A DNA stretch of 63,967 bases from Vitrella brassicaformis CCMP3155 (GCA_001179505.1 CDMY01000313.1:1-63967), one strand, 5' to 3'. Counted from the first letter of the stretch, positions 27,361 through 61,788 are shown. Numbers and translations: made by a program. The notes: generated by a model not told the origin, from the letters alone.

Positions 27361-27920
27361 CTATCTGCCTCTTCTCCTTCTCAGCTCTGCGAGCTGGAGG
27401 GCAGCCGTAGCACCGAGCTTCTCTTGCCGAGCGGTGAAGTCTTGCATGCTCATGCACTGCATCATGACCTCCAAATACTTCGGAGTGCCCGGACACCTGT
27501 CCACCGCATTCAAACCCTGAACGAGACACACGAAGGAGAGAGAGACACGACAGTAATCGTCTTGTCCTTCGTCTGTTCGTCTGGCGGGGTGTTGTTTACC
27601 GCGTTAGATGGGTCGACTTGGCACTGATGGACGCCCTGGCACCAATCCCTCACCCTTTCGGTCACCTCCTCAACACAACTCGTCGAATATCCCTCAGGAG
27701 CAGGCAGCGAACCGTCACTCTCCACCGCAAGCACATCCTCCTCAGCCCCGCCCACAGAACTCGCCGCCACGTCCTCAAGCGGCGTCTCGGCCGCGGCGGC
27801 CGACGGCCGACACACAGAAAAGCCCTCCGTCCTGCCCCACACCGCCCTCTCAATAAACAGAACCTCATCTCTTGAACAAGACAACGACTTATCCACTGCG
27901 TTCGGGCAGACAATTCTCTG
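27361..27920 (-). other. SUEL/rhamnose-binding (Gal_lectin) domain, C-terminus of the mosaic gene
   Basis: [18 protein letters not shown]...C...SC..EV...[13 protein letters not shown]...[16 protein letters not shown] matches the SUEL pattern (DPCPGTxKYLEVxYxC). Confidence 0.85.
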
Positions 27921-29656
27921 CTGAATGGCAGAGGAGAGGCCTGGCGGGGACTACCCTGGAGGGGCCCTTGCTGGTCTGTCGGTCGCTTCAGCGTCTCGCC
28001 TGCACACAGCGGGCAGGTCTTGGTCGCAGGGGACCTCGGCAAGGAGGAAGAGAGGCGACCCGGCGTCCTGCGGGCCCCACCTCAGCTGCCCACACCCCCA
28101 CTGAATGCCGGCACTCCGCCTCCTGTCTCTCTCGATAAGTGACAGGTGCCAGAAGGGGGTGGGGGTGACCGGCGAGAGGGCCGCTCTTCTGTCGTGCCCG
28201 TGCCTTTGTGCTTGGTTGACTTGTATGGTCGAAGAGACGTTGTTGAAAGCCGGGTCGGTGAGGCGGTCTGGCAGGGGTCCGAGGTGCTGCGGCGGGAGTG
28301 ATCCTGGGTGGGGGTCGAGTGGCGACTGCCAGCCGGTGCCGGCCGTGCCGCCATGGTCGATGGCCGCCTCGTAGTGCCGTTTCGCGCCCACCCAGCAGCC
28401 TTGGCTCCTGATACATGCATGGATGTGTTCCAAGCCAGATGAGCAGAGAAAGGGAGAGGGAGAGTTTTCTGTCTGCTGTGGTATTCTTTCTGATCGACCT
28501 GACTGACCTGCATATTTGTGTGAGGACAAAGTAGGCCTCCTGGGGGGAGGCCACGCTCGCGAGATAGCTCTGTGTGGGTGGGTTGAGGATGTCGTCCTTC
28601 GTACAGGCCTCCCCGCCCTCAGCGAAGCTCATCTTCATGCCCGGGTGCGCCACCCGCCAGCAGGAGTACTCCTTCTCAACGCCCTTGAGACACCGTCCGG
28701 CACCGAACAGGCTGCCGGCCTCGCTGCCCTCTGACAGAGGGCTCCTGGTCTTGACGAGCGAGCCTGTGGGGGCCTCGTTGAGCGCCAGGTAGAAGATGTC
28801 CTCGGGCTCGTTTGTGAGGTGCGCGCGCTTGTCGGAAGGGTCGCCGCCGCGAGAACAGATCTCGCCGCACAGGTGGGCCTCAAACTGACAATGGCGTGTA
28901 GAGAAAGACACATAGACACACCAGGTGGGCACCAGGTCTGTGTCTGTGTCTGTGTGTGTGAGTTGTCACCCCGTTCGAGTCGGCGCTGTCGAGCCGCACT
29001 GAGACGGCGTGTGTCTCGCGGACAGTCGGTGGCACTGCGAACAGGTGGGGCTTGCTGTGGCTGGTGAAAACGATCGACCTGTCTGCTTTGGGGAACTCCA
29101 CACGCCTTCTCTGGCCGTCGATGCCCTTGCCGTCGTATGGGACCGCCATGTACTCCCTGTCGGCGAACAGACCGAAAGGCACCTTTCTCTCCCCCCCAAC
29201 AGTGGGCGCCATCGCCATCCACCCCACAACCTCATCCTGGTGCTCTCTTCCAGCCGACGGGCCGCCAAGGGTCACCTTGTCGTCTTGCAGCGCCATCCAG
29301 AAGCCGTCTTCGTGGGTCTTGTTGATGCGCACCACTAGGTAGCCCCCCTGCAAGTATGACTGCACTTGAGCGATGACCACGGGAGGCGCGTCGAACCGCT
29401 CGGGAAAGACGACCCACTGGAAGGCGCCGTCGCCGCGGACCTTTGTAGCGCCCACATGGAAGGGCAGCTTCAGCGTGGAATGTGCGTGTGCAGCAGATGT
29501 GTCGGTGGTGGGGTCGTATGGTGGTGCGGCGATGAAGCTGCCTCGGTCGATGGCGAGGATGTCGACCGTCTCGGGGTCGTGCTGCTTGTCGCGGCAAGAG
29601 GCCTCCTCCACACGAGCATCGAAGCACCAATGGTCCGGGGACGGGCACCTACAAGA

Positions 29657-29690
<34 letters not shown>

Positions 29691-32600
29691 TCGACGCGTC
29701 AGTGGGTGATCAACTCAAAGACTCACTTATAGTCGGTGCTTTGCCCCCTTCGCAGGTGTTTCAGCCTCCCCACAGCCTCGGTCGAATCACGATTGAAGGC
29801 CGGGCCCAGAAACACAACCGGCGGCAGCAGGTCAGCAAACTCGTCCGCCGCAGCACTGGCCGACGCCCCCTCCCCATGTAGAGTGCGGCGGAGCAGCACC
29901 GTCGTCCACTCGCTTGACAGCTTCAACCGGCCGCTCTCGCCGATGGTGACGAGCGCCGAGGGGGTGAATGGCTGCACGGGCTCGACGGCGATGTTCTCGC
30001 CGGGCAGCATGAGGGGGTAGTTGCTGTAGGGGACGTTCTCGAAGGCGCTGGGGGCGACAGCGAGGGCGGCGACGGTCGTGCCGTAGGGGAGGGACACCGT
30101 CCGTTCGGATTGCGAGGTCGGGGCCGTCTCGACGTCGGTGCTCTCCTCGAAGCCCGTGGCGCATCCGTGATCCTGACCGTGGTGAGACATGAACACATGG
30201 GGGCGATTGATGGATGGATGGATGGCTTCTCTCACCTCATAGACGACTTTGGCGTGTTGGCCGTCGACGTCATTGGCCCTGAGTGACGCGGGGTTGTGCT
30301 CGACATCCACAGGGGGCGGGTCAGAGTACTGCGGGGCGAGGAAGAGCATTGGGTAGCGGTTGACCAGGGTGTCGTGCTCCTCGTCCAAGAAGGGCCGGGG
30401 ATACACCAGCGACAGATGCTCGCCGCCCTTCTGCAAGTCTTCGCGGGTCTAACCAACACAGATGCATGGCGGCGAGAAAGCTGCCTGTCTCTTGCTTCTG
30501 TGCTGTGTGTGTGTCTGTATAGGTGTGTACCACTTTGAATGCAGTGAATGTCCGCCGGCCGAGGTGCCCCGATGTGGCGGCGTCGAGGGCGATGTAGCCG
30601 ACCCGCTCGGTGGGGTGAGGGATGGACCGGCCCACCTGAACAACAGCCACCCAATCATTGGCATGGATGGATCTCGAGAGAGAGAGAGATACCCTCCCTC
30701 CCTCCTCACCTCTGTGAGGGAGACATCCTTGAGGTTGAGCTTGAAGTTGTGGTCAGTGACGTTGACGATCCGCGTCTCGACGTAATCCGTCCCCTCATTC
30801 GTTTGCAGCTGACCAAAGCCAACAGAGACACAAGGCATATACTGACTGATTCATGCCGTGTGCATGGGATGCGCTGCTCCTGGCCCACTTGCCTGTGTGA
30901 GGACTAGTGGTGGCGTGCCGAACGGCGCCTTGAGTGAGACGGCGTGCATGTGTTTGTCGCCGACGACATCGGCCACATTGGCTTCCACAGTCAGCCCCTC
31001 CATGGTGCGATACCGACCTGCCTGCAGAGCGATCCAGCTGACGTGCACACGGGCTGCGGCCTTCGACTTGCGACAGGGGCTCGCCTGACCGACCATCGAC
31101 CAGCCAACCCATGACGCAACCAGGAATATTACCCCCCACCGCTCCCTCTCTCTCACCGACCTGCAGCTTGATATCAAAGCACCATGTGCCGACGTTGTCC
31201 GTGTCCAACGAGGTCCCCTGCGCAGATATCCCGCCGGCATGCATAAAGCGGCTCCCTCCCGGCGTGCACGAAGGGTCCGACGCAGACGCAGGCCGCACAT
31301 TCCTGATCCTTGGCAGCGGCAGCCCCTTGACAGGCCCGGGGAAGGCCAGCACGACGGGATAGGTGTAGACCTGCTGCAGCCTGACGGTGACCCAGCCTTT
31401 CTCCTTGAAGAGTGCTGTTGTTGTTTCGGCCTCATCGGTGCCGGTGTGGAGGTCGCTGCCGCCCGGGTGGCCAAGGGTGAGGAAGAGGGAGCCCGTTTCG
31501 CCGATGGGGATCTGGCCGGCCTGCGTGGCCGCCTCGAAGTCGCTCGGAGGGGGAATCGCCGTCGGCTGGAAAGCTGCATGCCATGTATCAGACATGAGAC
31601 ACGACGCTTCTGCGCTCCTTGCTGCCTTTGTTCCTATTTCGGCTCACTGTCCGCAACCACCTCCAGTGGCGCGCTGTCCTTCTCCTCATCCAGAACAAAG
31701 TACCCCACTGTCTCATTGTAGACCCTGCCGCTCCCCACCTCCCCGCCATCCCGCAGTGTGCGCTCCACCGTAAGGTTCGCCGTCTTGTGTGACCGGTGGC
31801 CCGCCCTCACGTGGAGGGGGGTGGTCTCGCGGTAGGTCAGGATGGAGGCCAGCACGTGGGGGCTCGTGGTCTTGCCGAAGTGGTTCCTCCGCCGCCGGTT
31901 GCCGCCTCCGAGACGCTCTTCCTCGGAGGTGACCGTATCCGTTGTGCCTTCTGCACCGGAGGCGGTCGGGGGCGCTGATTCGCCGTCTTCGGGTGGGAGC
32001 TCTTCATCGTGTGGCGGAAACTTGCCGATGGGGACAACCCTGTCATTTGCCACGTGCTGACACACACCAGAGAGAGAGGACAGAAGGATGGAGGGTCCGT
32101 GTCCGATTGGATGAAGGTGCATCGTGTCTCACCACTCGTCCAGATGAAAATGCCCGGCTGCCGAAGAAGCCCTTGGGGCTGACCTCCATGGCCATCCACC
32201 CCACACGCTCCGTCGGGTGGTTGTTGCCGAGGTCCGCACCGTCTCCCTCCAAAGCCAGCTCGAAACCTCCCGCCGTCACGTGTCTCACTCGGGAGCTCAC
32301 AAAAGACCGCCCGCGGGACGTCTGGATCTGCACACCACACGCGAAAGAAAAAGAGACAGCCATCCAGAAAGGGTCAGAGACAACAGGATGGATGGCAGTC
32401 ACCTGCAGGACGATCAGCGGTGGTGTGGGGAAAGGGTCGTCGAAGAGCACGGCGTGGAAGGCCCGGTCGCCGGGGACCTCCACCGATCCCGTCTGGAAGA
32501 GGTGGCCGTCGTCAGAGCGGAAGAGGCCGGCTTCCACGGCCAGCCAGTCCACTCGCTCCTGCTTGTGCCAGCCATCTGTCACGTTGCCAACCTAAGAAAG

Positions 32601-35600
32601 AAAGGAAGAAAGAGGGAGAATTCCCAATCCGCCAACTGCACAGGGCAATTGTGTCAAGTGCCCGACCTGAAGGTGGATGTCGAAGCACCACTTGCTGCCT
32701 GTCGGGCAGGGGGCAGGCCCGATGTCCTCTGCTGTTGCCCCCCCAGCCCCACCGCGGCGCATGTTGCCGACGCGCACCACCAGCGGGCGGATGCCGCGGG
32801 CGGTGGGTGGCCCGGCGAGGACGACGGGGTACTGCAGGTTCTCGGTGATGGACACTGTCTTGGGCTTCATGCCCAGGCGCACCTTGCCCGACTCGCCTAT
32901 GACCTTCCGGGCTGGTGATGGGCAGACAGAGACACGAAGAGACGTAAGCAGGAGGGTGGAGAGTGTTTGTTTCCTTGCTGCTGTTGTCTTCCTTGGCTGC
33001 TTACGGCATTTGGCTGCGCATGAGCCGCCACAGTCGATGCCCACTTCGTCGCCATTGCGGACGCCGTCGTTACAAGCAGCTGACAAGACAACACGCAGCT
33101 CGTGGACACAGGGATGGCACTCTCTCCCTCTCTCCCTCTCTCTCTGTCACGTACACGTGGGCCCCTTTGAGATCAGCACTTGGGGCGCAGCGAACACCAG
33201 CTCGCCCGCAGACCCCCCCTGAGCACCACACGGGCGGGCCTTGATGGACATTGCCTGCTGGGCGGTCATGTGCAGGACCGCACAGGCGTCCTTCTTCTTG
33301 TCGGGGGCGCCGGCCTCGTCGATCGAGATGTATCGGGACTTGAGGTCGTCGACGTTGACAAGCGAGCCGTCGAGCCACTTCCAGAGCTCCCCCACCTTGC
33401 GGTGCATCCCTAGCCAGAGCGATGCTGGGAGCGTGACAAGCTCCGAAGACGTCAGCAACTCCTACAAAAGACATGATGTGAAGGAGGCAGAGAGGGAGGG
33501 AGGGAGGGAGGGAGGGAGAAAGGGAGGGAAAGATGGCCTTACCTCAGCAAATTGCGAGTCGTCCCATGTCTTGAGGGCGGCCAGCCGGCCGCCTTTCTCC
33601 TGGCTCGCCTGCACCGCCTCCAAAAGGGTTGAAGCTTTCACCACCTCCACCAGTCCACAGAGCTGCGTGGTCCGTGCCTGCGGCCTGGCCTCCTGCTCCT
33701 CGGTCTCTCCATATTTGGTGAAGCCTGCCGGACAGGCCTCGCAGCGGTATCCGCCGGGGGTGTTGATGCACACGCCCCCGCCGCAGACATCCACCTTGAG
33801 CTCAAGAGTCTCGGCCTCGTCGGAGGGCTGCTCGCCGGTGCTGCGGGTCTCGACGCACTCGTTGACATCTGCATCCATCCATCCATCCATCCATCCATGG
33901 TGTGANNNNNNNNNNNNNNNNNNNNNNNNNNNNNNNNNNNNNNNNNNNNNNNNNNNNNNNNNNNNNNNNNNNNNNNNNNNNNNNNNNNNNNNNNNNNNNN
34001 NNNNNNNNNNNNNNNNNNNNNNNNNNNNNNNNNNNNNNNNNNNNNNNNNNNNNNNNNNNNNNNNNNNNNNNNNNNNNNNNNNNNNNNNNNNNNNNNNNNN
34101 NNNNNNNNNNNNNNNNNNNNNNNNNNNNNNNNNNNNNNNNNNNNNNNNNNNNNNNNNNNNNNNNNNNNNNNNNNNNNNNNNNNNNNNNNNNNNNNNNNNN
34201 NNNNNGAGGGAGAGGGACGGGGTAGGGAGGGGAGAGGGGAGGGGTACCTTTGCATGAGAGACCGTCCTCGGCCAGGACGAAGCCTTCGAGACACTCGCAT
34301 TGGAAGGACCCGGGCGTGTTGATGCAGACGTGCTCACAGCCGCCGTTGGTCACGGGGTCGGCGCACTCGTTGATGTCTGAATGCACCCACCCATGGGAAA
34401 CATTTGGAAGGTCTGACGATGTGTCTGTCTGTCTGCATTCATTGTGACGTCTGTCGTCTTGTCTTGTGGGTACCCACCTGTGCACCTTCCGCCTGGCTCG
34501 AACCTGTACCCCTGCTCAAAGCAGTGCCTGTGCTCAGCGTCCATACGGTGCGGATGATCTGCTCAACCCACCCCATCCCATACAAAGCAACCATACGCAC
34601 ATCCACCCATCCATCCCTCTTTCGCTCTCACTCGGTCCGGGTTTGCACAAGGGCTCCTTGGTGAGGTCCGCCGTAGGGTCGAGGACCCACGCGCTGTAGC
34701 AGAAGGGGTGCATCTCAGGCTCCCCATTCTGGTCGGTGTCGGTCACGTTGACCGCCCCGCCGGCCTCCACCATCTGCTACCCGCCNNNNNNNNNNNNNNN
34801 NNNNNNNNNNNNNNNNNNNNNNNNNNNNNNNNNNNNNNNNNNNNNNNNNNNNNNNNNNNNNNNNNNNNNNNNNNNNNNNNNNNNNNNNNNNNNNNNNNNN
34901 NNNNNNNNNNNNNNNNNNNNNNNNNNNNNNNNNNNNNNNNNNNNNNNNNNNNNNNNNNNNNNNNNNNNNNNNNNNNNNNNNNNNNNNNNNNNNNNNNNNN
35001 NNNNNNNNNNNNNNNNNNNNNNNNNNNNNNNNNNNNNNNNNNNNNNNNNNNNNNNNNNNNNNNNNNNNNNNNNNNNNNNNNNNNNGGTGTTTCTTTGCTA
35101 AGTCACCGCTGCAGCTTTGTCGGTCTTCGTCCAGCTCGTATCCCCAGCGGCAGGCACACACCTTGCCGCCCAGTGTGTTCTGGCACTGGTGCTCGCAGCC
35201 GCCATTGTCCGTCAGACACTCATTCAAATCTGCCACAGACACACACACAAACACACACAAACACATTCACGACAGCACTTGGCTCATGTTTCTCTCCCTT
35301 TATTTGCTAGTGTCCTCACCGTGGCACTTGGTGCTGTCTTTGCCGACGTGTGTAAACCCCGATCTGCAGACGCACTCGTGCCCGCCCAGGGTGTTGACGC
35401 AGTAGTGGTCCACATCGCAGCCGCCCCAGCTATATGTGCACTCATCGACATCCTGACAGACAGACAGGCACCCACACACACCCCTTGCAAGCCACCCCTC
35501 TGTGTGTATGGTGTCCTCTGGGCGGTCAGCTCACCTCGCAGGTCTTGGCGCGCTCATTCAGGTAGAAGCCGTGCGGGCACTCGCAGTACAAAGAGCCTAT

Positions 35601-38600
35601 GGTGTTGTGGCAGGTCTGGTTGAACTCGCACAGAGCCCTTCCCTCACTCTCTGCCTGGGCGCACTCATTGACGTCTTCGCAGCGGTCCGTCTGTGTGTTG
35701 TGTCAGTAGCCGTGCTCGCACTTGCACTCGTAGCCCTTGGGGTGCGCCGCGCTCTTGGGGAGGTTCTGGCAGGCCTGCTCACAGTCGTCCTCCTCGTGAA
35801 GACACTCGTCGTAGTCCTCACAGTGCCTTCCGTCAGGTGCCAGCTGGAAGCCCTCGTGGCAGAGACACCTGTGGCCGCCCGGGGTGTTGACGCACAGGTG
35901 CTCGCAGCCGGACTGGCCGGTGGCGCACTCGTCGGTGTCTTGGCAGGCGCCTGTGGGTGTCTGGGTGAAGCCGGGGAGGCACTGGCACTCGTAGGAGCCG
36001 ACTGTGTTGACGCACAGCTCGTTGGGGCCGCGGCAGAGGCTGCTGTTGACCAGGCACTCATCGATGTCTGCGTGTGGCAACATACACACACACACACATA
36101 GGCACAGGGGGGAGATCGTTCATTCGTTCGCTACCAGTGCAGTTGCGTCCGTTGGGTGCGAGTTTGAACCCCTCTGGGCAGGTGCACGTCTTGCCCCCAT
36201 CACTGTTGTCACAGCCGAACTCGCAGTGGTGGCGGTTCCGGGCCATCCCACACACATCCACAACCGCTGCACAGAAACCGAGCCATACCTTGCGTCACAT
36301 GGACGGACGTCTGGGTGTCTGGGTGGCTTACCGGTGCAATTGGGCTGTGCGGGTGAGGGGAAGGTCCACCCCCTGTGGCAGCGGCAGAGTGCGCCGCCGT
36401 CCGCGGTCACCTGGCAGTCGCCATGGTTGCAGTAGAAAGAATTGTCCTTGCAGGGGTTGGGTTTGGGGGGCCGGTGCTCCACTGCAGCCATCCATCCATC
36501 CATCCATCCGCAGGCACACATGTGTGTGTGTGTGTGTGTGTCTGTGTGTGGTTACCGCAAGTGAGTCCGTCTGACGTGTCGAGGGCGTATCCGTCGCTGC
36601 ACGTGCAGCCCGGCTCGACGCCATACGGGGTGAGGTACGAGTTGCAGTGGCCAACCGGCCCCAAACACTTGAGGTTTGAACACCCGTCATCCACTGCACC
36701 CCAAACCACATAGAGAGACAGACAGACAGACACTCGTACCCCTGCATGTGTGTGTGTGTGTGTGGGGGGGGGGGGACGTGGGNNNNNNNNNNNNNNNNNN
36801 NNNNNNNNNNNNNNNNNNNNNNNNNNNNNNNNNNNNNNNNNNNNNNNNNNNNNNNNNNNNNNNNNNNNNNNNNNNNNNNNNNNNNNNNNNNNNNNNNNNN
36901 NNNNNNNNNNNNNNNNNNNNNNNNNNNNNNNNNNNNNNNNNNNNNNNNNNNNNNNNNNNNNNNNNNNNNNNNNNNNNNNNNNNNNNNNNNNNNNNNNNNN
37001 NNNNNNNNNNNNNNNNNNNNNNNNNNNNNNNNNNNNNNNNNNNNNNNNNNNNNNNNNNNNNNNNNNNNNNNNNNNNNNNNNNGGGGGGGGGGGGACGTGG
37101 GTGGGTAAGTTACGGCAGGTGATGTTGTTCCATCCCAGAGTGTAGCCGGCCGCGCACTCGCAGTGATACCCGCCCTTGGTGTTGACGCACAAGCCGAATG
37201 GCGGCGAGTCGCACAGAGTGTCGTCCTTGTCGCACTCATTCAAGTCAGCCACACACCACGACGACACACCCACACGAGCCTCCTCCCTCCATGTGTCCAT
37301 CTATCTCTCCTTGCTGTGCCGGTCATGCCGACGGTACCGATGCATGTGGCGTTCTGTGGGCCGTCAGGGTCCTTCTCGTACCCCGGCTCACACACGCACT
37401 CGAAGCCCGGGAACAGGCTCCTGCAGAGGGCGTGAGGGCCACAAATGCCGCCCGACTTGGCCGTCTCGGCGCACTCGTTGATCGCTGCCACACACGCACA
37501 CAGAGAGAGAGGGAGAGAGAGAGAGAGAGAGAGAGGGTGAGACATGATCCGGAGGGCGGTGTGTGTGGATGCGTATGCGTCTGTGGGATTGGCATGTGCC
37601 AGGCTGGCTGCCTTCTCGGTACCCCGCCCCACAGCCGCATTCGAATCCGCCAGGCGTGTTGCGGCACTCCTGCCCGCACGTATTGAGCGTGCTGTCCTCG
37701 CACTCGTCTATGTCTAAACACACGAACACACACACACACACACACATTCCTGCCTCCTGTCTGTGTCTCTGCGCTGCATCATGGCTGTCGTGACGCACCG
37801 ATGCACGCGTGGCGGTCGTCCGCGAGCTTGTAGCCCTTGTCGCACTCGCACCTGTAGCTCTTGGGGAGGTTGATGCAGGTGTGGTCGCACAGAGAGGTGC
37901 CCTCCGCGCACTCGTCGACGTCCACACACTGGTTCTTGACGACGTCGTAGAACTCCCCCTTGCTGCAGCGGCACTCGTGGGAGCCCTCCTTGTTGATGCA
38001 GCTCAGGCTGGCCGGGCAGATGTTGGGCGTCAGACACTCGTCGATGTCTGCCATGAAGACATCGTTGATCATTATGTGGGAGAGGAGGGAGGTGGTGTGG
38101 GGCTGTGTGCTCACCGACACATGTCTTGTTGTCTTCTGAGAGCTCGAAGCCTGCCTCGCAGCTTCACGAGAAGCTGCCATTGGTGTTGATGCAGGCGCCG
38201 TTGCAGCCACCATTGGCATGGGAACACTCGTCTATATCTGATTGCACACCACACCACACCACACCACATGTCAACCATGGCTCCCTCTTGATGCACACAA
38301 AGTCAGTCAGGCGGGGCGGACCTTCGCAAGTGCGGTCCTCAAAACTGTAGGCGAAGCCTGGCGGGCACTCGCAGGTGTAGCGGCCCGGGAGGTTCCTGCA
38401 GCCCAACAGGGGAGGGGGGCAGACACTCCCTGGCCGCTGCTGCTGCCCCTCGGCCAATGTCTCATTGCACTCGTTGATGTCTGCGCGCACGGCCGGACAC
38501 ACAAAGGACGGCATCTGTGTGTGTGTGTGTGTGTGTTGTGTATTGTCGCGACCGACCGATGCATTGCGTGCCGTCGGTGCTGGGTCGGTATCCCGTGTCG

Positions 38601-41600
38601 CAGAGGCACTGGTACCCTCCCTCGGTGTTGGTGCAGATCCCCCCGCTGCAGACGTCCTTCTTCTCGGCACACTCGTCGACATCCTCGCACTTCATCGTCA
38701 GCTCGTTATGCCGAAACCCCTTTCTCCCACACACGCAGCTGTACTCGCCCACCGTGTTAGCGCAAGTGGCATCGTCCCCACAGAGCGGCGCTTGGGGCAG
38801 GATGAAGTCGGGGTTGACCGTGGTGTACTTGCCCCGGTTAACATGCCGGGTGGTGATGTCGCTGCGGAGCGGGGTGGCGCCGCCGGCTGTGAGAGCGCAC
38901 TCGTTGAGGTCCTCGCACTTGGTGTGGTCGAGGGAGGGGACGAACCCGGTGAGGCACTGGCACTCGAAGCCGCCTTCGGTGTTGACGCACGCCGTGGTGG
39001 TGCTGTCGCCACACACGTCCGGGGCGGCCTCACACTCGTTGATGTCTGCCCCGAAACAATACATACACACATTTCTCTGTGCGTTCACGATCTTGTCGAT
39101 GGTCGGTCACCCACCCTGGCAGATGGTTTGGCCTTCACCGGTGCCGTGTGGGTCAGGGGCCTCCTTGTATCCCTCGCGGCACCTGCACTCGAAGCCGCCC
39201 TCGTTGTTGACGCACTTGCGCTTGGGGTCCCGGCAGGCAGGAGTGCCCTTGGCGTCGATGCCGTCAACACACTCATCGATGTCTGATGATTGATGACACG
39301 AATGATGCACACATGTCTCTGTCTGTGTGGGCTGCTGGTGGCTGTAGTGTCTGTGTGTCTGTGTGCGTACCGACACACAGTGGGTGGAATTGGTCAGCGT
39401 GGGGGTCCATATGGAAGCCATCCTTGCAGCTGACACACAGACACAGCAGAGAGAGGGTGGGGCTTGGACGTGTTGTATCGTGTTGTGTTGTGTTGTGTAT
39501 TGGGGCTGACACGCATTCGTATCCCTTGGGGGTGTCCCGGCAATTGCTTTTGCCGTCCTCGCCGCAAGGGGCCTCCATGTCTCGACACATGATGGCTGCA
39601 TCACATCACACCCACACACAGCCGATGGATGGCAACATACATGCATCGATTGCTTCGTCACTTGTGAGCGTGTGATCACGTTGGCAGTCGCCGGCAAGGT
39701 CCTTCTGCATGTGCAGGGGGCACCCACACGTGTGGCCGCCAGCATAGTCGAAGCACTGGTCCTGACAGGGGTTCTTGAGACACTCGTCCTCATCTGAGCC
39801 CGCCCACATGAATGGGTTGACCCTCAATGTGCCATAGTGTGGTAGGCCCATACCGATGCATGTGGTGTTCCAGTCGTCGGCAGGGAGCCATCCGGCTCTG
39901 CATTGGCAGTAGAAGCCGCCGGGGGTGTTGATGCAGTCGGCGTGGCGGGGGCAGGGCGACGTCTCTATCGAACACTCGTCGATCTCTGACACAGATGAAA
40001 CAGATGAATGAAATCGGGAGAAAGAATGCCGGACATGGCTACCTTTGCAGGCTGTGTCGACTCTCTCGTAGCCCACCCTGAGAAGCCGGCCGGCCATGGA
40101 CAGACAGACAGACAGTGAGTGTACACACACACACACACACACATATTTCGATTGCATGCTCGCACCACCGACCTGCAGCTGCAGTGAGCTCCGTCCCTTC
40201 TGTTGTCACAGTACTGGTCGCAGTTGCCATTGTCCATCGCACAAGGGTCCTCACTCGCACCCTCTGCACACATGCACACAACAGCCTCCATCATATCGAC
40301 ATCCCAAACCAAACTCGCCTCTGCCCACGCACTTTCGCATCTGAATCCATCGTTCTGCATCCTGAAGCCCCTCTCGCACTCGCACCTGAACGAGCCAGGC
40401 TCGTCCACGCAGCCGCCGCCCCTGTCAGAGCACAGCGACACGCCGTAGTTGCTGTCGGCGTCGCAGCCCCCGGAAACGGGGCACTGGACCGTCACGCCAT
40501 CCGCCGCGGCCCACTTGACCATGGCTGCGTCCTGACGCACACGCCACTTGCCTGCAATCATCATGACATGAGACACACCCATGGGGTTATTGGTGTGGTG
40601 TCTGTCGTGTGGTTGGAATGGGATGCCATGCCTACCAGATGGCGGGAAGTCATAGCGGGATGGCGCGTACGCGAGGACCTCCCTCGTGTCGAGGTCGGTG
40701 TCGAAGACCCACCATCCGTTGGCAGTGGCGGTCGGCAGGGGCCAGCCCCGCTGCAGCCGCTCCAGCACAAAGGAGTGGTTGGCTGGGGGAATCCAATACA
40801 GATGCACGCCGCCCTTCTGCCAGTGGGGCCTGCAGAGAGAGGCGGACAGAGATGGGATGGGCAGGGGGGAGAGGTGGGTGGGTAAGGAAGCCTACTTACT
40901 TTCCGTTGAGAGGATGGCTGGCGTTGGTTTCCTCATAGGTGCCACTGAGTGTTTTGCCCAGCGCATTGGGCATCCCCAACACCTCCACAAACGGCTTGCC
41001 GAAACACGCTGAATGGGCCAACACAGAAGACACACACACATTATGTTAGTGTGTCGATACCTCTTCTGCCTGCCTGTCTGTCTGTCTGTCTGTCTGTCAC
41101 CTCCTTTCTCCTGCTGTGGTGGGTTCGATAGGTGCCGGCAGGTCAGCCGGAAGAACGCACAGTCCTCCTTGCACTCCACACCAACAATTACGCCCTCCGC
41201 CTAACAACCCAGCGCACAGCAACCATTTCTCCCTCTCCCTGTGTGGAGCATTGCATCACTTACGCCGCATGACAGATGGTCTGTCGCCCCCGTGGTGCTC
41301 CACAGAGTGGTCCACGCCCCACGGTCGATGCGTGACCTCCCAAGGGGTCGGCCACACTGAATCCGGATGGACCGGCACTTGCCCGGGTGGCGGAACTCCG
41401 ACGTGCTCTGCAAGGGTGCGGGGCAGTCGGCTGGCAGCAGCTGGAGGCGGGAGGTGGCCTGGCCGGGGGGGCAGATGGTTTGCTGGTGGGGCTGCAGCCA
41501 CTCGCCTTCGCTCAGCTTGACGTCGGACTTGATGTCAAAGCGCATCTTCATGCAGAACCTGGAGGGGGGGAAGGAGCACAGAAATGCATGGGCAGGGTGT

Positions 41601-44600
41601 TCCTGTGCTATACACTACTGACTCTTCGGTGCATCTGAGTCCCTTGTAGGCCGTGGCTGTGTAGGGACTGAGGCCCCCGTTGGCCGTGCTGAATATGTGG
41701 GTCATCTTCTTGGCTGCCGGCACGACCACAGCCGCGTAGATGCCCCACTCCTCAACGCGACACACGTTCCGACCCCTGATGGATGGATGGATGGATGGAC
41801 CACAATAAGGGAATGGTCGATGCGATTCAGCGCACCTTTCCATTTTGAAGTATCCATTTGCTGCGAATGAGGTGCCCCATGAGTTGCGCAGCAGCCAGTA
41901 GAGGGTGCCGTCCTCCTCGTCCCAGCCCACCAGCACGGCGCTCTGGCTGCCCACTGGCGAGTCACCGGATACATCATCGCGGCTGTACACACCTGCAAGA
42001 CAAAGAGAAGGTGAGAGGAGAGGAAGGGCCAATAGTGCTACTCGTCTTCTCTCTCTCTCTCTCTCTCTCTCGCCATGCAGCATAGTACCGTCCGGCACTT
42101 CGGTGAAGTACTCAAAGAAATCGGGGTAGACCTCAAACGCCACAAAGAAGGGGCCCCGCTGAGACACACAGATAGATACAAACAGAAAAAGGGAAGTACC
42201 ATGAGAGTTTTTGCGTCTCCTGTCGCTCTGTCATGTCTGTGTCTCTCTCTCACGCTGATGAGCTCCATCTGCATCTGCCGCATGACCTGCCCCACACAGG
42301 CCCGCCCGCCCGTCGCCCGCTGCTCGCCAGGGCGGGACAGACGGTAGTACTCGTTGATGAACACACGGCTGGAGGGAGTGGCGGGGTCTTTCAGCAGTAG
42401 ATCCTCGGCACAGAAGGGCATCTGGCTGATGCACTGCGGACAGTCGGGCCTGCATCAGGGAAGGGCACGAGTGCGTCCATTTGCTGGCTGCTTTGTGACC
42501 GGTCCCAATCGACCCACCTGCATCCCTCCTGAGTGGTGATGGCCTCCTCCCCACTGTCCATCTGCAGAAAGCTCTCTTGTCCCTTTGAAGACTGCCTTCT
42601 GCTGGCCTTGGAGGCGCTGTGCGTCTCGAGCATGGCGGCGTAGTTGTCGGGCGGCGGGGCGACGGTGATGGGCGACCCGTCCACGTCGATATCGGTCGGC
42701 CACCGCGCCACGTGTGGCCTGCCGTTGCCGTGCTCGCCATTGGGGCCTGGCTCGACGGTCTGTGGGGACGCTTCTCTGTGCCAGCAGTACACTGCATAGA
42801 CAGAGACAGAGACAGAGAGACATGGGACTTGCCCACGAGACGAGGGCGGATCGGAAATGTCGGCAAAGTACTCACTTTCATAAGGGTAGTCTTCGGCGAA
42901 CCCGACTCCTTTGTTGCGTATGTACTCGAGTGCGATGCTGGCCCAGCCGCCCTCACAGCCGGGCCTGAGAGACTCCTTGGCCTCGAACTCGACCTCGCTC
43001 TCGTTCATCCGGGGCCACCCAGCACATGACAGCACCTGACGTGGTACAGGAATGGTGTCAGGGGAGGGAGGGAGGGAGGGAGGGGAAGGAGGTGGGTAGG
43101 GCGTGCCCACCTGTTGGACGGAGAGGTGTCTTCTCATCTCATTGGAGATCATGCGGTCTGGGTTGGCGATGCAGGCGCGGTCACTGAGCGCACCCAGAAG
43201 CTGACCACATATCCGATGAACCAAGCACAACAGATGAACATTTAATGACAGGTGGAGAGTCGATCGGCCTACCGCAAATGCCCAGCATGCACCACAGTAG
43301 CCTGATACACGCGGCCCAACGCAACAACACACCACACCACACCACACCACAAGGAAGAGTCCGTCCTTTTTGAGCGATCCGGAGACAGAAGGACATCTGA
43401 CCTTGGCTCTGGACTTCTGAGTGGTCAGGGGGGAAGCAGAAAGGATAGTGCTTCCGAACGTCGTACTCAACGGGCAGCTTCAGATGACGGGTCACCCACG
43501 TCTCGCGAACCTGCCACACAAACAAAGACAGACAGACAGACACTTCTCATGCATTTCTGTCTGTGCGTCACTCCCTCCTCACCTGTAATAATGAGAGGTC
43601 GAGGTTCATGCCCATGCCGCCCTTGCTCATGCCCCAGAACCCCTGCGACCGCTTCACACGCTCCATCGTCCCCCCAATCCCCAGCCGAACCCCCAGCTCC
43701 TTGACCTCTTCCAGAAAGCCCGCCTGCTTCATGTCGCCCCTCGCGAGCTCGTCCCTCAGCTTGGGGTGGGGCATTCCCTCCATGTGCCTTCGCGGTTTGC
43801 GGCAGATGTAAGGGAGCGAGGTGTTGCAGTGCTGGGCCACGACCTTGGGGACGTCCAGGGTCAGGTGGCCGGGGCTGAGGGCCCCACACGATTGGTCGGG
43901 TTTGCGGCTGGTGGGCGGGCTGTAGGGGTGCAGACCAGTGGAAGCCTTCAAGGGAGTGCCGTCGAGGTACTCCCAGGCGTTAACCGACGTCTGATAATGA
44001 GCCCCTGTGAGCAAAGAACAGACGTCCATATATGTGAGACGGCTTCTGTGTGTCGGCGGTGTCTGACCGATCCAGCACAATGGCTGATTGCACAGGGGGG
44101 CGAGGAATGCGCGTTCGTTGCTGGTGACGGGCATCACAAGCTTGGCCCCGTAGTCGTCGCGGCATCGCTTGACAGCGTTGTGGAAAGACTCGGGGCGGTG
44201 GATCAGCTTGAAGCAGTAGACGCCATGCTTCGAGAAGCCCTCCTCACACGCAACTGTGCTCAGAAATGGGTCAATTGGCGGAGCTGGTGCAGTGCAGTGC
44301 ATCCATCCCTCCATGTGTATGTGTGTGTGTACGTGGCAGTGCGAATGTGGATCTGCTTGTGAGGAAGCAGACGCCAGAGGGGCCCTCCACAGTGCCCACA
44401 AGCGAAGACACTATGTGCGTCGTCGGTGCCCGGCCTTATGGAGCACAAAAAGAAAGACATACAGGGAGGAGGGATTGTCGCTGTCGATGCATCCATCCCC
44501 ATCCATTGCCATAGAGATCATTAAATGCTCACTTGAGTCTGCCCTCTTGGCGTAGACGGTCATGCTGATGAGCGGCGCGATGCTCATGTGCGGCGGGCTC

Positions 44601-46396
44601 TTGCACTGATCGGCGTCAAAGCACCGACACACACCTCCCCCAAACGGGCTCGGGTCCCAGTCACACAAACCATGCGCCCAGCAGAACTCTGACCAGCGAC
44701 ACACGAAAGCAACACGTACATGTGCATCCTCTTCCTTCAACGAGCCCACTTTTGCAAGATTCGTGATCGGCGGGAGCGTCGAGGACACGCTTGAGCATCT
44801 GCTGGCAGCCGCGGGACTCGGTGATCTGCTTGCCGGGGTAGGCCTTCCACGAAGGTCCACTCGACAACGATGCGGTGGAGATTCAAGGTGGTCGTGGTGG
44901 TGGTCGTGGCGGTCGTCTCATTGGACGGCGATCCAGGCGCAGAAGAGACGTTCACCTGGATTGCATTTAATGGAGGGATGCTCAAGTGTTGCACGAGTGC
45001 TTATTCTCTGACCTACATCGGCTCACCCTGTCCCTGACGGCGACGACCATGCTGACATCGAATCCCTGCACAATCTGGACCGACGAGCGCAGCACCTCGA
45101 CGATCTCAATCTCCTTCGAGTCGTGGCACAGCCGGCTGGTCCGCTCCCTGTTGAGCGCCGCCTCGGCAGCCATCCGCGAGCTGACCACCAGACGGCTGTC
45201 CACAGGCACCTGCCGGCCGCTCTGGGGATCTGTAGCCGTCTCCTCGCATGGAGCTGATAGACAAGCATTCGACAGATGCACACATGGCTGACATCCTTAC
45301 ACGTGGCTTACGAGGGAAAGGGCGTTGTATTTGCCATTTCCACAGTCCAGTGCGGTTCGTGAAGTGGATAAAGGTGAAGAAGGACGGTGGCTCCTCCAGC
45401 AGCAACAGGCGGTCGGAGGGGGCCTTGGCCTCGCCGACACGCCAGTGGCCGGCGATGAGCGATTGGGGTGCGATGGGGTCCAATGGGTCGGGGACACACT
45501 GCTCACGTTCTTTGTTGATCGCCCTCATTGCCTCATTGCCCAATACCTGCACACAAGACACACGTGGACAAGAGAATACACCAGAACAAAGCCAGACAGA
45601 AGGGCGACAGCCTCCGGTATACACACCAAGTCGAGTTTCTGTCTCTCCTGGCAAGACGCCGCAATCAGAGACGCCTTCGCCATGCCGTGGATCTCCAGCC
45701 ACCGCTCAAAAGCTTCGAGGGTCTCCTTGTCAACTGAACGTCCAGCACAGAACAGAACAGAAGATCCATCCATCCATCCATTCATCCATTCATCCATCCA
45801 TCCATCAACACGGGATGGATTGGCTCACGGGTGTCATCAATCGTCCTCTCAGTGCATCCCTGTGCAGCGTCTGCCGCCACAGGCTGAGAAAGGTTCGATA
45901 GCGCGGCAGACTCGTGGAGGGAGGGGATACTTCTCCTTCCCTGAGCACTGCCATCGATGGCTGCGATGGGGGGAGGGGTGGGGGGGAAGAGCAGCTCGTC
46001 AGCTGGATCGGTGCTCGGCGGTGCGTTGAGGGCGTCCTCTGGGCTCTCGAAAGGCAGAGTCGGGTCATCGACGTCAGGCTCTCTTGAGTTGATAATACCA
46101 CCTGCAGGCAACCAGGCAAGAACACCGCAGTGCAGATTTTATCGTGAGGTCTCTGCCCTTCACTGCATTCACCAGATGACCCATCTGGAAAGCCCTGCAC
46201 GCGGCGGACAGCTGCAAATCGTAAAACGGAACACAATGCATCTTTCTGATCCAGTCCAATGGCCTCGCACACCTCTTCTGGCCTCCAGCGTCTCCTTGAA
46301 GTGTCTTCCCCGCTGCGCGCCGACCGCTATCAGTCGGATGGTTGCAACGCAGAAGCAGAGCACCGCCAAGGGACGCCAGGAGCGAAGGTGGGCCAT
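27361..46396 (-). CDS. Giant secreted mosaic protein: signal peptide, cystatin-like, C-type lectin, papain-family domain (His->Gln), 25 or more EGF/cbEGF, C-type lectin, H-lectin-like repeats, C-type lectin, SUEL lectin
   Basis: ATG 46396 [27 protein letters not shown] (signal-like). The junctions I checked splice in phase (5' exons; CTL-protease; protease-linker; last exons to ...[13 protein letters not shown] at 27361-27363); most EGF and lectin-repeat junctions were not checked. One apparent frame switch near 44850 and three N-gaps. Confidence 0.75.
28850..32920 (-). other. Three tandem super-repeats of H-type-lectin-like beta modules
   Basis: Each unit begins GE(S/T)G...V.L...(Y)PVV..(G)P...WCFD, then F..PF..PP.V..Q(V/L)Q(T/S)..G...V..R...VT..(G)F...L....H..E.VG(W/Y).A. 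Confidence 0.6.
33150..33670 (-). other. Second C-type-lectin-like domain
   Basis: [19 protein letters not shown]...[19 protein letters not shown]...DACAVL...ARPC. Confidence 0.75.
33906..34205. other. Assembly gap (300 N)
   Basis: Run of n. Confidence 1.
34786..35085. other. Assembly gap (300 N); may hide an exon
   Basis: Run of n. The flanking donor is phase 1 but the downstream exon needs phase 0. Confidence 1.
36783..37082. other. Assembly gap (300 N); flanks overlap
   Basis: Run of n. Both flanks carry poly-G followed by acgtgg(g). Confidence 1.
41715..43500 (-). other. Papain-family (C1A) protease domain with catalytic His replaced by Gln
   Basis: LPVEYDVR; SQG|YCGACWAFA; LSVQQ|VLSC; GCEGGW; DYPY; [16 protein letters not shown]; [11 protein letters not shown]; YWLLRNSWG...NGYFKMER. 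Confidence 0.9.
43790..44255 (-). other. First C-type lectin domain
   Basis: [15 protein letters not shown]...SFHNAVKRC...AKLV...CWIG|AHY...WEYLDGT...SCGAL...[12 protein letters not shown]. Confidence 0.88.
45030..45200 (-). other. Cystatin-like domain
   Basis: Helix [11 protein letters not shown] followed by [23 protein letters not shown], containing a QxVxG motif (QIVQG). Confidence 0.55.
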
Positions 46397-46815
46397 TGTG
46401 ATGGGCTCTGGTCGGCCTTTGCAATGGCGTGTGGAAGACAGAAGCCCTTCCGCGCCGAGTCGCAGAGTCTGCGACTCACGGGCCGTCCTTGGGCCGTCAA
46501 GTCAGGGCTGTGCGATTGTGCGATATGGCATTCGAACTCTCCTCCCAGCAGCTGCGCAGTGTCGCGGGGAGGGAAGGGCGAATTTGGGGACAAAGCTCGC
46601 ATCCCTGCATTGGGGCCTAACAGTAGCGGTGAGGAGTGAAGGAAGCCCAAAAAGAACCATCGCGAAGCACCATATGTGCTGCTGGGTTGTTGCGCTGCTC
46701 GTTGTAGGTATCCTCTCATCCATCTGGCGTCGGCCTCCCATGTGGCAGCGCGTTTTGTCGGCCAGCCTCCTTAACGACATGAATGAGGGCTGATCTACGC
46801 CAAGGGGTCTGAGTC

Positions 46816-61488: not shown

Positions 61489-61788
61489 NNNNNNNNNNNN
61501 NNNNNNNNNNNNNNNNNNNNNNNNNNNNNNNNNNNNNNNNNNNNNNNNNNNNNNNNNNNNNNNNNNNNNNNNNNNNNNNNNNNNNNNNNNNNNNNNNNNN
61601 NNNNNNNNNNNNNNNNNNNNNNNNNNNNNNNNNNNNNNNNNNNNNNNNNNNNNNNNNNNNNNNNNNNNNNNNNNNNNNNNNNNNNNNNNNNNNNNNNNNN
61701 NNNNNNNNNNNNNNNNNNNNNNNNNNNNNNNNNNNNNNNNNNNNNNNNNNNNNNNNNNNNNNNNNNNNNNNNNNNNNNNNNNNNNNNN
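61489..61788. other. Assembly gap (300 N), intergenic
   Basis: Run of n. Confidence 1.

Follow-up and report, generated by a model that had tools for sequence, protein, structure and literature searches.

A giant mosaic gene of Vitrella brassicaformis CCMP3155 is interrupted, not intact. The locus lies at 46396-27361 on the minus strand of the window, the 63,967-nucleotide stretch that forms the beginning of contig CDMY01000313.1, and spreads ~75 exons over ~19 kb from an ATG at 46396 to a TAG stop at 27363-27361. It is one transcription unit. On balance we favour the reading that this is a single ancestral gene whose frame has been broken by four lesions, leaving an mRNA that codes only for the N-terminal 1,772 residues. 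An earlier note on the sequence had placed a string of domains at 27361-46396, which we also find there on the minus strand, and had proposed one continuous spliced reading frame encoding one giant protein. That proposal is not supported: two in-frame TGAs, a lost splice donor and a lost splice acceptor are carried by the mRNA itself.

In the public annotation the locus appears as five genes on one strand (412, 1441, 153, 323 and 1910 aa). Transcript evidence joins them. RNA run X5 contains a spliced contig of 10,991 nt with at least eight GT..AG joints, which covers 33542-38449 and adds 5,550 nt 3' and 2,762 nt 5' of this interval; it extends from the 3' UTR through the gaps and the EGF stalk and, by exon arithmetic, to ~42.3 kb, inside the cathepsin-like domain. 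We conclude that the locus is one transcription unit because this contig crosses four of the five annotated genes and all three assembly gaps. The RNA evidence consists of assembled contigs of one run, a form in which rare isoforms are lost, and all runs apparently come from one culture strain.

The 5' end is consistent with the same conclusion. Run X5 contains 0.55 of 37100-46500, where 0.50 is expected with all model exons and 0.41 with only the exons below 44600; this share fits the all-exon expectation, so the upstream model exons are present in X5. The earlier note, which had predicted a single transcript, named ~44850 as a point where it might split. The boundary between annotated genes A and B coincides with a putative 61-nt intron (44749-44689), and none of nine sampled overlapping words of this intron was found in X5; DNA-like runs have them. 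Nor does the locus split at the gaps, the other place the note had singled out. Two gaps are intronic: RNA splices from 37114 to 36693 over the gap at 36783-37082, and the 214 transcript letters between the pieces flanking the gap at 33906-34205 are known exons. The third conceals 68 nt belonging to an exon; with 34785-34632 this exon comes to 222 nt and keeps the frame. Exon borders in 38449-33450 are set by RNA joints, and the 5' exon model (46396-38480) is our own dynamic-programming model, ~43 aa off each of two public models there.

The ancestor would have been a single gene of ~4,250 codons and ~75 exons, encoding a secreted, anchorless mosaic protein. Its head would open with a signal peptide and a Cys-rich EGF-like linker, followed by a C-type lectin-like domain, a cathepsin-B-like domain in which Gln replaces the catalytic His, and an unnamed domain. 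Next would come a rod of ~28 EGF modules and C-type lectin-like domain 2, then three H-type-lectin units of three domains each, a third region resembling a C-type lectin, and a SUEL lectin. The features, from the N-terminus, are as follows.

46273..46396, minus strand: exon 1, with the ATG and a signal-peptide-like hydrophobic segment (residues 6-29), from hydrophobicity
45027..45253, minus strand: exon with a QIVQG motif, called cystatin-like in the earlier note, from the motif alone
44533..44843, minus strand: six-Cys EGF-like linker across the 61-nt GT..AG intron (44749-44689), which is canonical and in frame
43700..44253, minus strand: C-type lectin-like domain 1 (Pfam Lectin_C, E = 1.5e-9, 39 bits)
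41623..43510, minus strand: cathepsin-B-like papain-family domain, ~10 exons, from Pfam pieces, PDB alignments and the exon model
40470..41558, minus strand: unnamed Cys-rich / beta-rich region of ~250 aa, 5 exons, between the protease-like domain and EGF1
33650..40465, minus strand: EGF stalk of ~28 EGF-like modules, mostly phase-1 exons, from regular expression, Pfam and RNA joints
34786..35085, no strand: assembly gap hiding 68 nt of an exon (joint from 34785 to 35107 with 68 letters between)
33155..33650, minus strand: C-type lectin-like domain 2 (Pfam Lectin_C, 20.6 bits on one exon piece, under the 22.6-bit cut-off)
33005..33079, minus strand: CxDG..NGDE.G.DCGGSC motif exon, from sequence
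28970..32911, minus strand: three H-type-lectin 'super-repeats', from Pfam, an iterated profile and a structure model
~32911-31648, minus strand: H-lectin unit 1 (P0001 448-792)
~31573-30236, minus strand: H-lectin unit 2 (P0001 835-1130)
~30172-28970, minus strand: H-lectin unit 3 (P0001 1235-1530)
28008..28884, minus strand: C-type lectin-like domain 3, from Atlas neighbours
27361..27917, minus strand: SUEL (Gal/Rha-binding) lectin with a long acidic insert, basic tail RRRRGR and TAG stop, from Pfam halves

Most of the domain string described earlier is borne out: the signal peptide, the first C-type lectin, the papain-family domain, the EGF modules, the H-lectins and, in two halves, the SUEL lectin. 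The inhibitor-like cystatin domain drops out, its exon giving no cystatin signal in Pfam, PDB phmmer (E <= 10) or Atlas features (best 0.56), and the third C-type lectin is weak. Apart from residues 6-29, no hydrophobic segment occurs in P0001 or in the first ORF of 1,772 aa, so neither a transmembrane segment nor a GPI tail is predicted, as the note had said. Domain 1 is the one of its three C-type lectins that clears the Pfam Lectin_C cut-off; its acceptor is in frame at either 44253 or 44283. The translation has KPD in place of EPN/QPD and no WND, so that the sequence supports the fold and not canonical Ca-sugar binding. The unnamed ~250-aa region, split over five exons, matches no Pfam family.

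The cathepsin-B-like domain belongs to the papain family by descent and is predicted to be inactive. Two exon pieces match Peptidase_C1 (PF00112) at 25.9 and 47.2 bits (cut-off 20.7), and the closest PDB sequences are mostly cathepsin B (E = 6e-8). Gln19 and Cys25 are kept in a Q-G-x-C-G-x-C-W context, the Cys being read across exons 43510-43402 and 43301-43273 and dependent on the splice model. Asn175 is also kept (RNSWG against ANSWN in a PDB alignment). We predict inactivity because Gln aligns at the catalytic His159 (cathepsin B His199), opposite GGHAIRILGW in two PDB alignments. The domain also carries an insert of ~100 aa. The note's papain domain thus keeps its family and loses its catalytic His; it is probably a pseudoprotease that serves in binding.

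The EGF stalk is long and of mixed type. Twenty-two regular-expression matches, together with split or damaged modules, give ~28 in total, and P0001 matches Pfam EGF_CA, cEGF and FXa_inhibition at 68, 65 and 74 bits, respectively. The calcium-binding start D-x-[DN]-E-C is present in 21 of the ~28. An array of '25 or more cbEGF' had been reported; the 21 modules of the calcium-binding type fall short of that number.

The 3' half carries the H-type-lectin super-repeats, every one of which is a unit of three domains that is conserved. Pfam H_lectin (PF09458) matches P0001 at 27.2 bits (cut-off 24), a local iterated profile finds seven domains, and the family is matched by 52 of 73 aligned relatives (best E = 1e-13). 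In relatives the number of domains is mostly 3, 6 or 9, and the three-domain unit also occurs in bacteria, phages and other alveolates. An AF2 model of the single-chain three-domain unit has pLDDT 79 and pTM 0.81, and full-length three-domain AFDB matches reach TM 0.65-0.71. The modelled domains have the six-stranded beta-sandwich fold of HPA, discoidin and SLL-2: Foldseek matches 3wmp (TM by target 0.66, probability 1.0), 6cl6 (rmsd 2.4 over 86 columns) and 2vm9. Family-invariant R/H/E residues are mostly retained in all three units. Pfam, profile and structure matches all agree with the three H-lectin-like super-repeats noticed earlier.

Of the other 3' modules, domain 2 is a weak C-type lectin-like candidate. 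The CxDG..NGDE.G.DCGGSC motif that the note had picked out is indeed encoded in its small exon, which has no Pfam match; the motif is missing from 151 H-lectin relatives. Domain 3 also has no Pfam match and is weakly supported as C-type lectin-like by its language-model neighbours (Lectin_C accounts for 95 of the 100 closest named clusters in the Atlas, score 0.90) and by BLASTP against domain 1 (E = 0.03-0.06). The SUEL lectin seen earlier is recovered as two ordered halves, profile positions 1-31 (29.3 and 27 bits) and 32-80 (26.5 bits), neither of which reaches the 31.4-bit cut-off, since the 80-position domain is interrupted by introns and a long insert. The public model lacks the N-terminal half; we propose a canonical, in-frame 90-nt intron at 28007-27918.

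Four lesions interrupt the frame.

38164..38166, minus strand: lesion 1, in-frame TGA replacing Cys4 of EGF11 (GSFS*SCEAGF), from sequence and RNA contig
37485..37622, minus strand: lesion 2, loss of the EGF14 donor, with cryptic GT 37622 used, from sequence and RNA
37246..37337, minus strand: lesion 3, EGF15/EGF16 intron retained in the mRNA, from acceptor comparison and RNA
35703..35705, minus strand: lesion 4, in-frame TGA in EGF22, from sequence and RNA contig

All four are the same in DNA and RNA, lie within EGF modules 11-22 and show no variant letter across four runs. Lesion 1 terminates both annotated gene B and the first ORF, of 1,772 codons; the RNA contig includes its exon (38237-38115), and none of the runs has another letter at the TGA. 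EGF14 has no GT past its sixth Cys, where one is expected near 37588. The cryptic donor gives a 91-nt exon (37713-37623), which shifts the frame by +1 and leads to a stop at 37390-37388; in the RNA, 91 record letters lie between 37484 and 37799, and depth bins match 37623-37713 exactly. At lesion 3 the acceptor reads cTG, against cAG in 13 sister exons, and the contig piece 37114-37484 is unbroken at full depth. Lesion 4 terminates annotated gene D, and the RNA piece 35534-36067 spans the site with no other letter. Annotated gene ends fall at the lesion-caused stops 38164, 37388 and 35703, and the five annotated genes are, in our judgement, probably fragments that the lesions produced.

Because the lesions sit in the mRNA, only the first 1,772 residues can be translated from the assembled message. 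Translation of this poly(A) mRNA would be limited to the head and 10.5 EGF modules, and the lectin-rich 3' half (~1,930 codons, still open) would not be produced from it; exon skipping would be needed for its translation. The gene has the ORF-disabling mutations of a unitary pseudogene (two nonsense, one donor loss, one acceptor loss). It does not have the spread of lesions along its length expected of neutral decay: all four lie in 12% of the CDS, 1.57 kb of ~12.8 kb (p ~0.007), with both flanks open, and the downstream 5.8 kb, ~28 exons, has no lesion (p ~0.008 for the three later lesions). A lesion-free 3' part would be unexpected if untranslated after the first TGA, which hints that selection on the 3' half may be ongoing.

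This clustering suggests another reading, which we consider rather unlikely yet worth weighing: productive mRNAs skip the damaged EGF cassette and yield a secreted protein of ~3,400-3,700 aa with the head and all lectins, the assembled transcript being a non-productive isoform. Confinement of the lesions to EGF11-22 between intact flanks of 1,772 and ~1,930 codons, with dozens of canonical splice sites, speaks for skipping, as do the retained family-invariant residues of the H-lectins. Since the majority of EGF exons are of phase 1-1, in-frame skips are possible, for example from 38322 to 35229 or of the 533-nt and 133-nt exons jointly. However, among the joints listed for RNA run X5 none is a bypass, the 11-kb contig passes all damaged exons without a branch, and skipping would take either several separate events or a single one of 3.1 kb.

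The remaining readings are far less probable. That one intact ORF merely looks broken through sequencing or assembly errors, in a region rich in repeats and gaps, is very improbable, even though there are three gaps within 3.3 kb of the lesions, DNA contigs of the runs end at the same repeats and the public annotation was automatic (PMC4501334). The independent RNA assembly X5 and the DNA-like runs X1, X3 and X4 match the window, with no other letter at either TGA, and the mRNA uses a cryptic donor and retains an intron, which is expected only where splice sites are truly lost. We give still less credence to five independent genes as annotated. These are Augustus models built with RNA-seq intron hints (PMC4501334), but their boundaries fall within EGF modules or introns, and four of the five have no signal peptide despite disulfide-rich extracellular domains, with starts in introns or another frame. 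Moreover, one spliced contig joins four of the models, and what separates A from B is a canonical in-frame intron missing from the RNA run. Scarcely credible is recoding of both TGAs, by selenocysteine or programmed readthrough: TGA1 does take the place of EGF11's fourth Cys, and the C that follows TGA2 makes a leaky context, but no SECIS or other Rfam match occurs in 24000-48000 (E <= 1), and recoding would leave the frameshift and retained intron unrepaired and three further in-frame stops (TGA, TGA, TAG) to pass.

For the ancestral or full-length protein we infer a scaffold or adhesion function. It may have been a multivalent glycan-binding extracellular scaffold in which the calcium-stiffened EGF rod would separate the protease-like head from the lectin cluster. 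TINAG and TINAGL1 are secreted matricellular proteins in which a crippled cathepsin-B-like domain, fused to Cys-rich EGF-like modules, is thought to bind and not to cleave; TINAG lacks the catalytic Cys. The Vitrella protein resembles them in being secreted, as predicted, and in setting a probably inactive cathepsin-B-like domain beside such modules. The likeness is functional: the Vitrella domain keeps its Cys and has Gln for His, and size, lectin modules and lineage are unrelated. The stalk recalls the cbEGF arrays of fibrillin and LTBP in its long run of tandem D-x-[DN]-E-C modules, from which a rigid rod is expected, but it has no TB/8-Cys modules, mixes in non-calcium EGFs and a 74-codon non-EGF insert, and has four genetically damaged modules.

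The H-lectin units match known sugar-binding and fibre-tip proteins domain by domain: SLL-2 (3wmp), discoidin II (2vm9), R-pyocin fibres (6cl6, 6ct8) and phage AP22 gp53 (4mtm), with Foldseek probabilities for single-domain matches of 0.4-1.0 (0.87-1.0 except discoidin II, 0.4-0.5). Helix pomatia agglutinin, discoidin I/II, SLL-2 and the pyocin and phage fibre tips are homotrimers with one domain per chain; Vitrella, by contrast, has three diverged domains on one chain.

Among alveolates, Toxoplasma Tg247195, a TSP1 and H-type lectin protein of the CRMP rhoptry-secretion complex (PMC9670195), is likewise an extracellular protein with an H-type lectin domain beside adhesive modules. Orthology is not implied, and Tg247195 differs in that it is membrane-bound and combines TSP1 repeats with a single H-lectin domain. 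Woo et al. 2015 (PMC4501334) report that in chromerids secreted sugar-binding mosaic proteins are numerous and EGF proteins are expanded. The Vitrella locus shares with chromerid and apicomplexan secreted mosaics (PMC4501334 Appendix 5; CCp/LCCL; EGF/TSP1 microneme-type) a signal peptide followed by strings of animal- or bacterial-like extracellular modules, but is without LCCL, TSP1 and vWA domains, and its ORF is interrupted. A cathepsin-B-like pseudoenzyme with 28 EGF modules, three H-lectin triplets, CTLDs and a SUEL lectin is not described in PMC4501334. A search of 5.8 billion proteins found none that shares the whole architecture, which the annotation holds as five fragments; the earlier impression that it was uncatalogued as one protein was right. 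The class to which it belongs, the sugar-binding secreted mosaics of chromerids, is already known (PMC4501334).

The gene that the earlier note had placed at 27361-46396 does lie between those coordinates, on the minus strand, so that it must be read downward. Scanning all six frames turned up 22 EGF patterns and the ...RRRRGR* terminus, all on the minus strand; a plus-strand reading, whose translation holds neither EGF modules nor LRRRRGR, was rejected. The start ATG is at 46396 (the protein opens with 28 letters not shown here) and the stop, a TAG on the minus strand, is at 27363-27361. One exon used as query against a representative library retrieved P0001, a protein of 1,910 aa with 100% identity across that exon. 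P0001 is CEM01905.1 / A0A0G4EU29 of Vitrella brassicaformis CCMP3155, encoded on CDMY01000313.1 of GCA_001179505.1, and contig numbering equals window numbering. Its cluster, checked for transcript-derived proteins, has a single member. The public annotation divides the locus into five genes on the same strand, of which only gene A has a signal peptide:

...-44661, minus strand: annotated gene A, 412 aa
44587-38164, minus strand: annotated gene B, 1441 aa
38072-37388, minus strand: annotated gene C, 153 aa
37300-35703, minus strand: annotated gene D, 323 aa
35668-27361, minus strand: annotated gene E (P0001), 1910 aa

P0001 starts inside an EGF module, in a different frame.

We compared four sequencing runs with 33450-38449. 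The spliced-RNA run, X5, yields a contig of 10,991 nt whose joints read CT..AC, or GT..AG on the minus strand:

34376/34478, 34558/34632, 35452/35535, 36067/36135, 36266/36332, 36693/37114 and 38047/38115, minus strand: joints of the X5 RNA contig

These joints expose as artefacts the micro-exons and the 84-nt 'intron' that our first dynamic-programming gene models had invented to avoid TGAs. They also place the assembly gap 36783-37082 within an intron (37113-36694). The gap 33906-34205 is intronic as well, since known exons account for the full 214 letters of contig that separate 33864 from 34632. A third gap, 34786-35085, conceals 68 nt of an exon that totals 222 nt, and the frame is therefore kept. 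Across this gap the public model splices 35162 to 34776; the RNA contig instead has an exon at 35229-35107 and another running from inside the gap to 34632. A fourth 300-N gap, 61489-61788, lies outside the locus.

The X5 contig extends 5,550 nt 3' of 33542, reaching the 3' UTR, and 2,762 nt 5' of 38047; exon-model arithmetic would put its 5' end at about 42.3 kb, in the cathepsin-like domain. Across 37100-46500 the X5 share of sampled words is 0.55, against an expectation of 0.50 with every model exon up to 46396 included and of 0.41 with only the exons below 44600. At the break between genes A and B we queried 44659-44779, in which each 31-mer overlaps a putative 61-nt intron (44749-44689): this stretch is present in six DNA-like runs and absent from X5. 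This putative intron has canonical borders, keeps the frame and completes a six-Cys EGF-like module. Further on, donor 44533 is in frame with acceptor 44253 or 44283, a junction that retains the lectin domain's first Cys. On the strength of the contig, the word shares and the in-frame A/B intron, the locus behaves as one transcription unit, and the five public models, CEM01905.1 / A0A0G4EU29 included, are pieces of it.

Several observations accompany the transcript data. Two of nine sampled words of the intron-containing stretch 44659-44779 also occur in X10, a 2025 marine-sediment metagenome run, where they may stem from an environmental Vitrella-like organism. The transcript contig implies a 3' UTR of ~760-810 nt, which would overlap the convergent eIF-3c gene (21603-26720, plus strand) that ends ~640 nt from the locus stop. 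Introns across 46396-27361 are short (~57-183 nt), with a tendency to CA-rich tracts following the donor and (TG)n or (TGGA)n preceding the acceptor; these repeats are also where breaks occur in the DNA contigs and in the assembly. Examples are:

acceptors 33868, 36481, 37713 and 35229, and donors 38557 and 36556, minus strand: polarised intron repeats

The reading frame carries four lesions, all inside EGF modules 11-22, and the ends of the annotated genes are these lesions:

38166-38164, minus strand: lesion 1, a TGA exactly at the fourth Cys of EGF11 (GSFS*SCEAGF)
37622, minus strand: lesion 2, EGF14 without GT after its sixth Cys (TGCCAA/tcccacag); the cryptic GT at 37622 is used in the mRNA
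EGF16, minus strand: lesion 3, acceptor cTG versus cAG in thirteen sister exons, by sequence comparison
35705-35703, minus strand: lesion 4, a TGA in EGF22 (13 protein letters not shown), in a contig piece with zero differences

We sought another letter at either TGA in the runs and saw none. Elsewhere, at 37120, 37 nt from the contig end beside a gap and in EGF16 coding sequence, the DNA-like run X4 reads G at full depth against T in the assembly. The lesion 2 exon, 37713-37623, fits exactly both the depth bins and the 91 letters of contig that separate 37484 from 37799, and its frameshift leads to the stop at 37390-37388, the end of annotated gene C. Because the X5 contig is unbroken over 37114-37484, the intron at ~37337-37246 is retained; it measures ~92 nt by sequence reading and 98 nt against the exon model, both 2 mod 3. 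The retained intron happens to compensate for the +1 shift, which restores the frame. Nonetheless, the mRNA has five in-frame stops, and its first ORF is 1,772 codons long. Selenocysteine recoding of the TGAs was considered and rejected: Rfam gave no SECIS match, and the splice lesions are beyond repair by recoding.

What do the lesions mean? They span 1.57 kb of a CDS of ~12.8 kb (probability ~0.007 that four uniform points lie so close), and the three later ones are confined to the first fifth of the CDS downstream (probability ~0.008). The 3' 1,930 codons, in ~28 exons, are still open, and most residues invariant in the family are retained in the H-lectin units. Taken together, these facts speak against an old neutral decay affecting the entire gene. 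We lean towards a recent truncation of the gene product. Skipping of the damaged exons in a productive isoform is favoured by the phase symmetry of most of these exons, and we nevertheless think it unlikely; since rare isoforms are invisible in contigs, we rank truncation first and skipping second. More doubtful again is a fuller proposal, in which the EGF11-22 block would be a decaying, normally skipped cassette and Vitrella would still secrete a protein of ~3,500 aa: a His-less cathepsin-B-like binding head, a calcium-EGF rod, three single-chain pseudo-trimeric H-type lectin units (nine domains), and C-type and SUEL lectins. Such a protein would represent a new class of alveolate matrix or adhesion proteins that crosslink glycans, with an H-lectin triplet shared with, and possibly acquired from, bacterial secreted enzymes and phage tail proteins.

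The 5' half of the locus was analysed exon by exon, and the domains listed in the earlier note fared unequally. The first C-type lectin is confirmed (Pfam, 39 bits); it has KPD in place of EPN/QPD and no WND, so that support for the fold does not extend to canonical sugar binding. The second has a borderline Pfam score, and the third draws support from a language model only; an AF2 model of that region made without an alignment was unusable (pLDDT 42.8). The papain domain is cathepsin-B-like and keeps Gln19, Cys25 and the Asn, but has Gln at the catalytic His, and is predicted to be a pseudoenzyme. The '25 or more cbEGF' become ~28 EGF modules, only 21 of the calcium-binding type. The cystatin-like domain found no support in Pfam, PDB sequences or Atlas features, and neither Pfam nor PDB supported an I29 propeptide-like reading of exons 45733-45312. 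The CxDG..NGDE..DCGGSC motif is present, with no Pfam match, and is absent from 151 H-lectin relatives. The SUEL lectin is probable, with profile matches in two halves, each of them below the cut-off. CEM01905.1 lacks the N-terminal half (27917-27831) because the in-frame stop 27953-27951 sits in a probable 90-nt intron (28007-27918), which the model reads through to that stop before jumping ahead.

The H-lectin-like repeats also stood: a profile iterated over 152 retrieved proteins detects seven domains in P0001. Relatives (P0002-P0150, retrieved with 28970-29647) mostly have 3 (24 proteins), 6 (74) or 9 (25) domains. Position-specific signatures mark an alignment of 73 three-domain segments, 52 of which match Pfam H_lectin, and AF2 run with this alignment gave a model of the first unit (P0001 448-792) with pLDDT 79.4 and pTM 0.81. 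Taken singly, the domains of the model match SLL-2 (a coral lectin), discoidin II and the tips of pyocin and phage tail fibres (Foldseek, PDB). Against the PDB the three-domain model obtained single-domain matches alone, and the global E-values were poor, because each chain of a solved H-lectin has just one domain. The whole unit does match AFDB models (TM 0.65-0.71, E down to 7e-18): secreted peptidases of bacteria, one phage tail protein, and entries with chromerid- and dinoflagellate-looking accession series. The proteins to which this conserved unit of ~270 aa is appended are peptidases of bacteria and archaea, phage tail proteins and proteins of alveolates. The H-type lectins and fibre tips with solved structures form homotrimers, and by this analogy the three-domain unit is a putative single-chain pseudo-trimer.

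We see the value of the locus in annotation correction, the clustered-lesion puzzle and the H-lectin triplet module. One public model without half its SUEL domain needs correcting, and the locus is a worked example of how in-frame stops and lost splice sites can split giant mosaic genes in the automatic annotation of chromerids, whose genomes serve to infer the origin of apicomplexan adhesins. Lesions clustered in mostly phase-symmetric EGF exons with intact flanks raise the question of whether repeat cassettes can decay while a gene survives by exon skipping. Structural biologists working on lectins may find the triplet of interest, since it is likely to be a single-chain counterpart of the H-lectin trimer. 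A search of 5.8 billion proteins returned none with the same layout. Numerous secreted mosaics of sugar-binding and EGF domains have already been described in chromerids (Woo et al. 2015, PMC4501334), and the locus is a mosaic of this described type, with a broken ORF.
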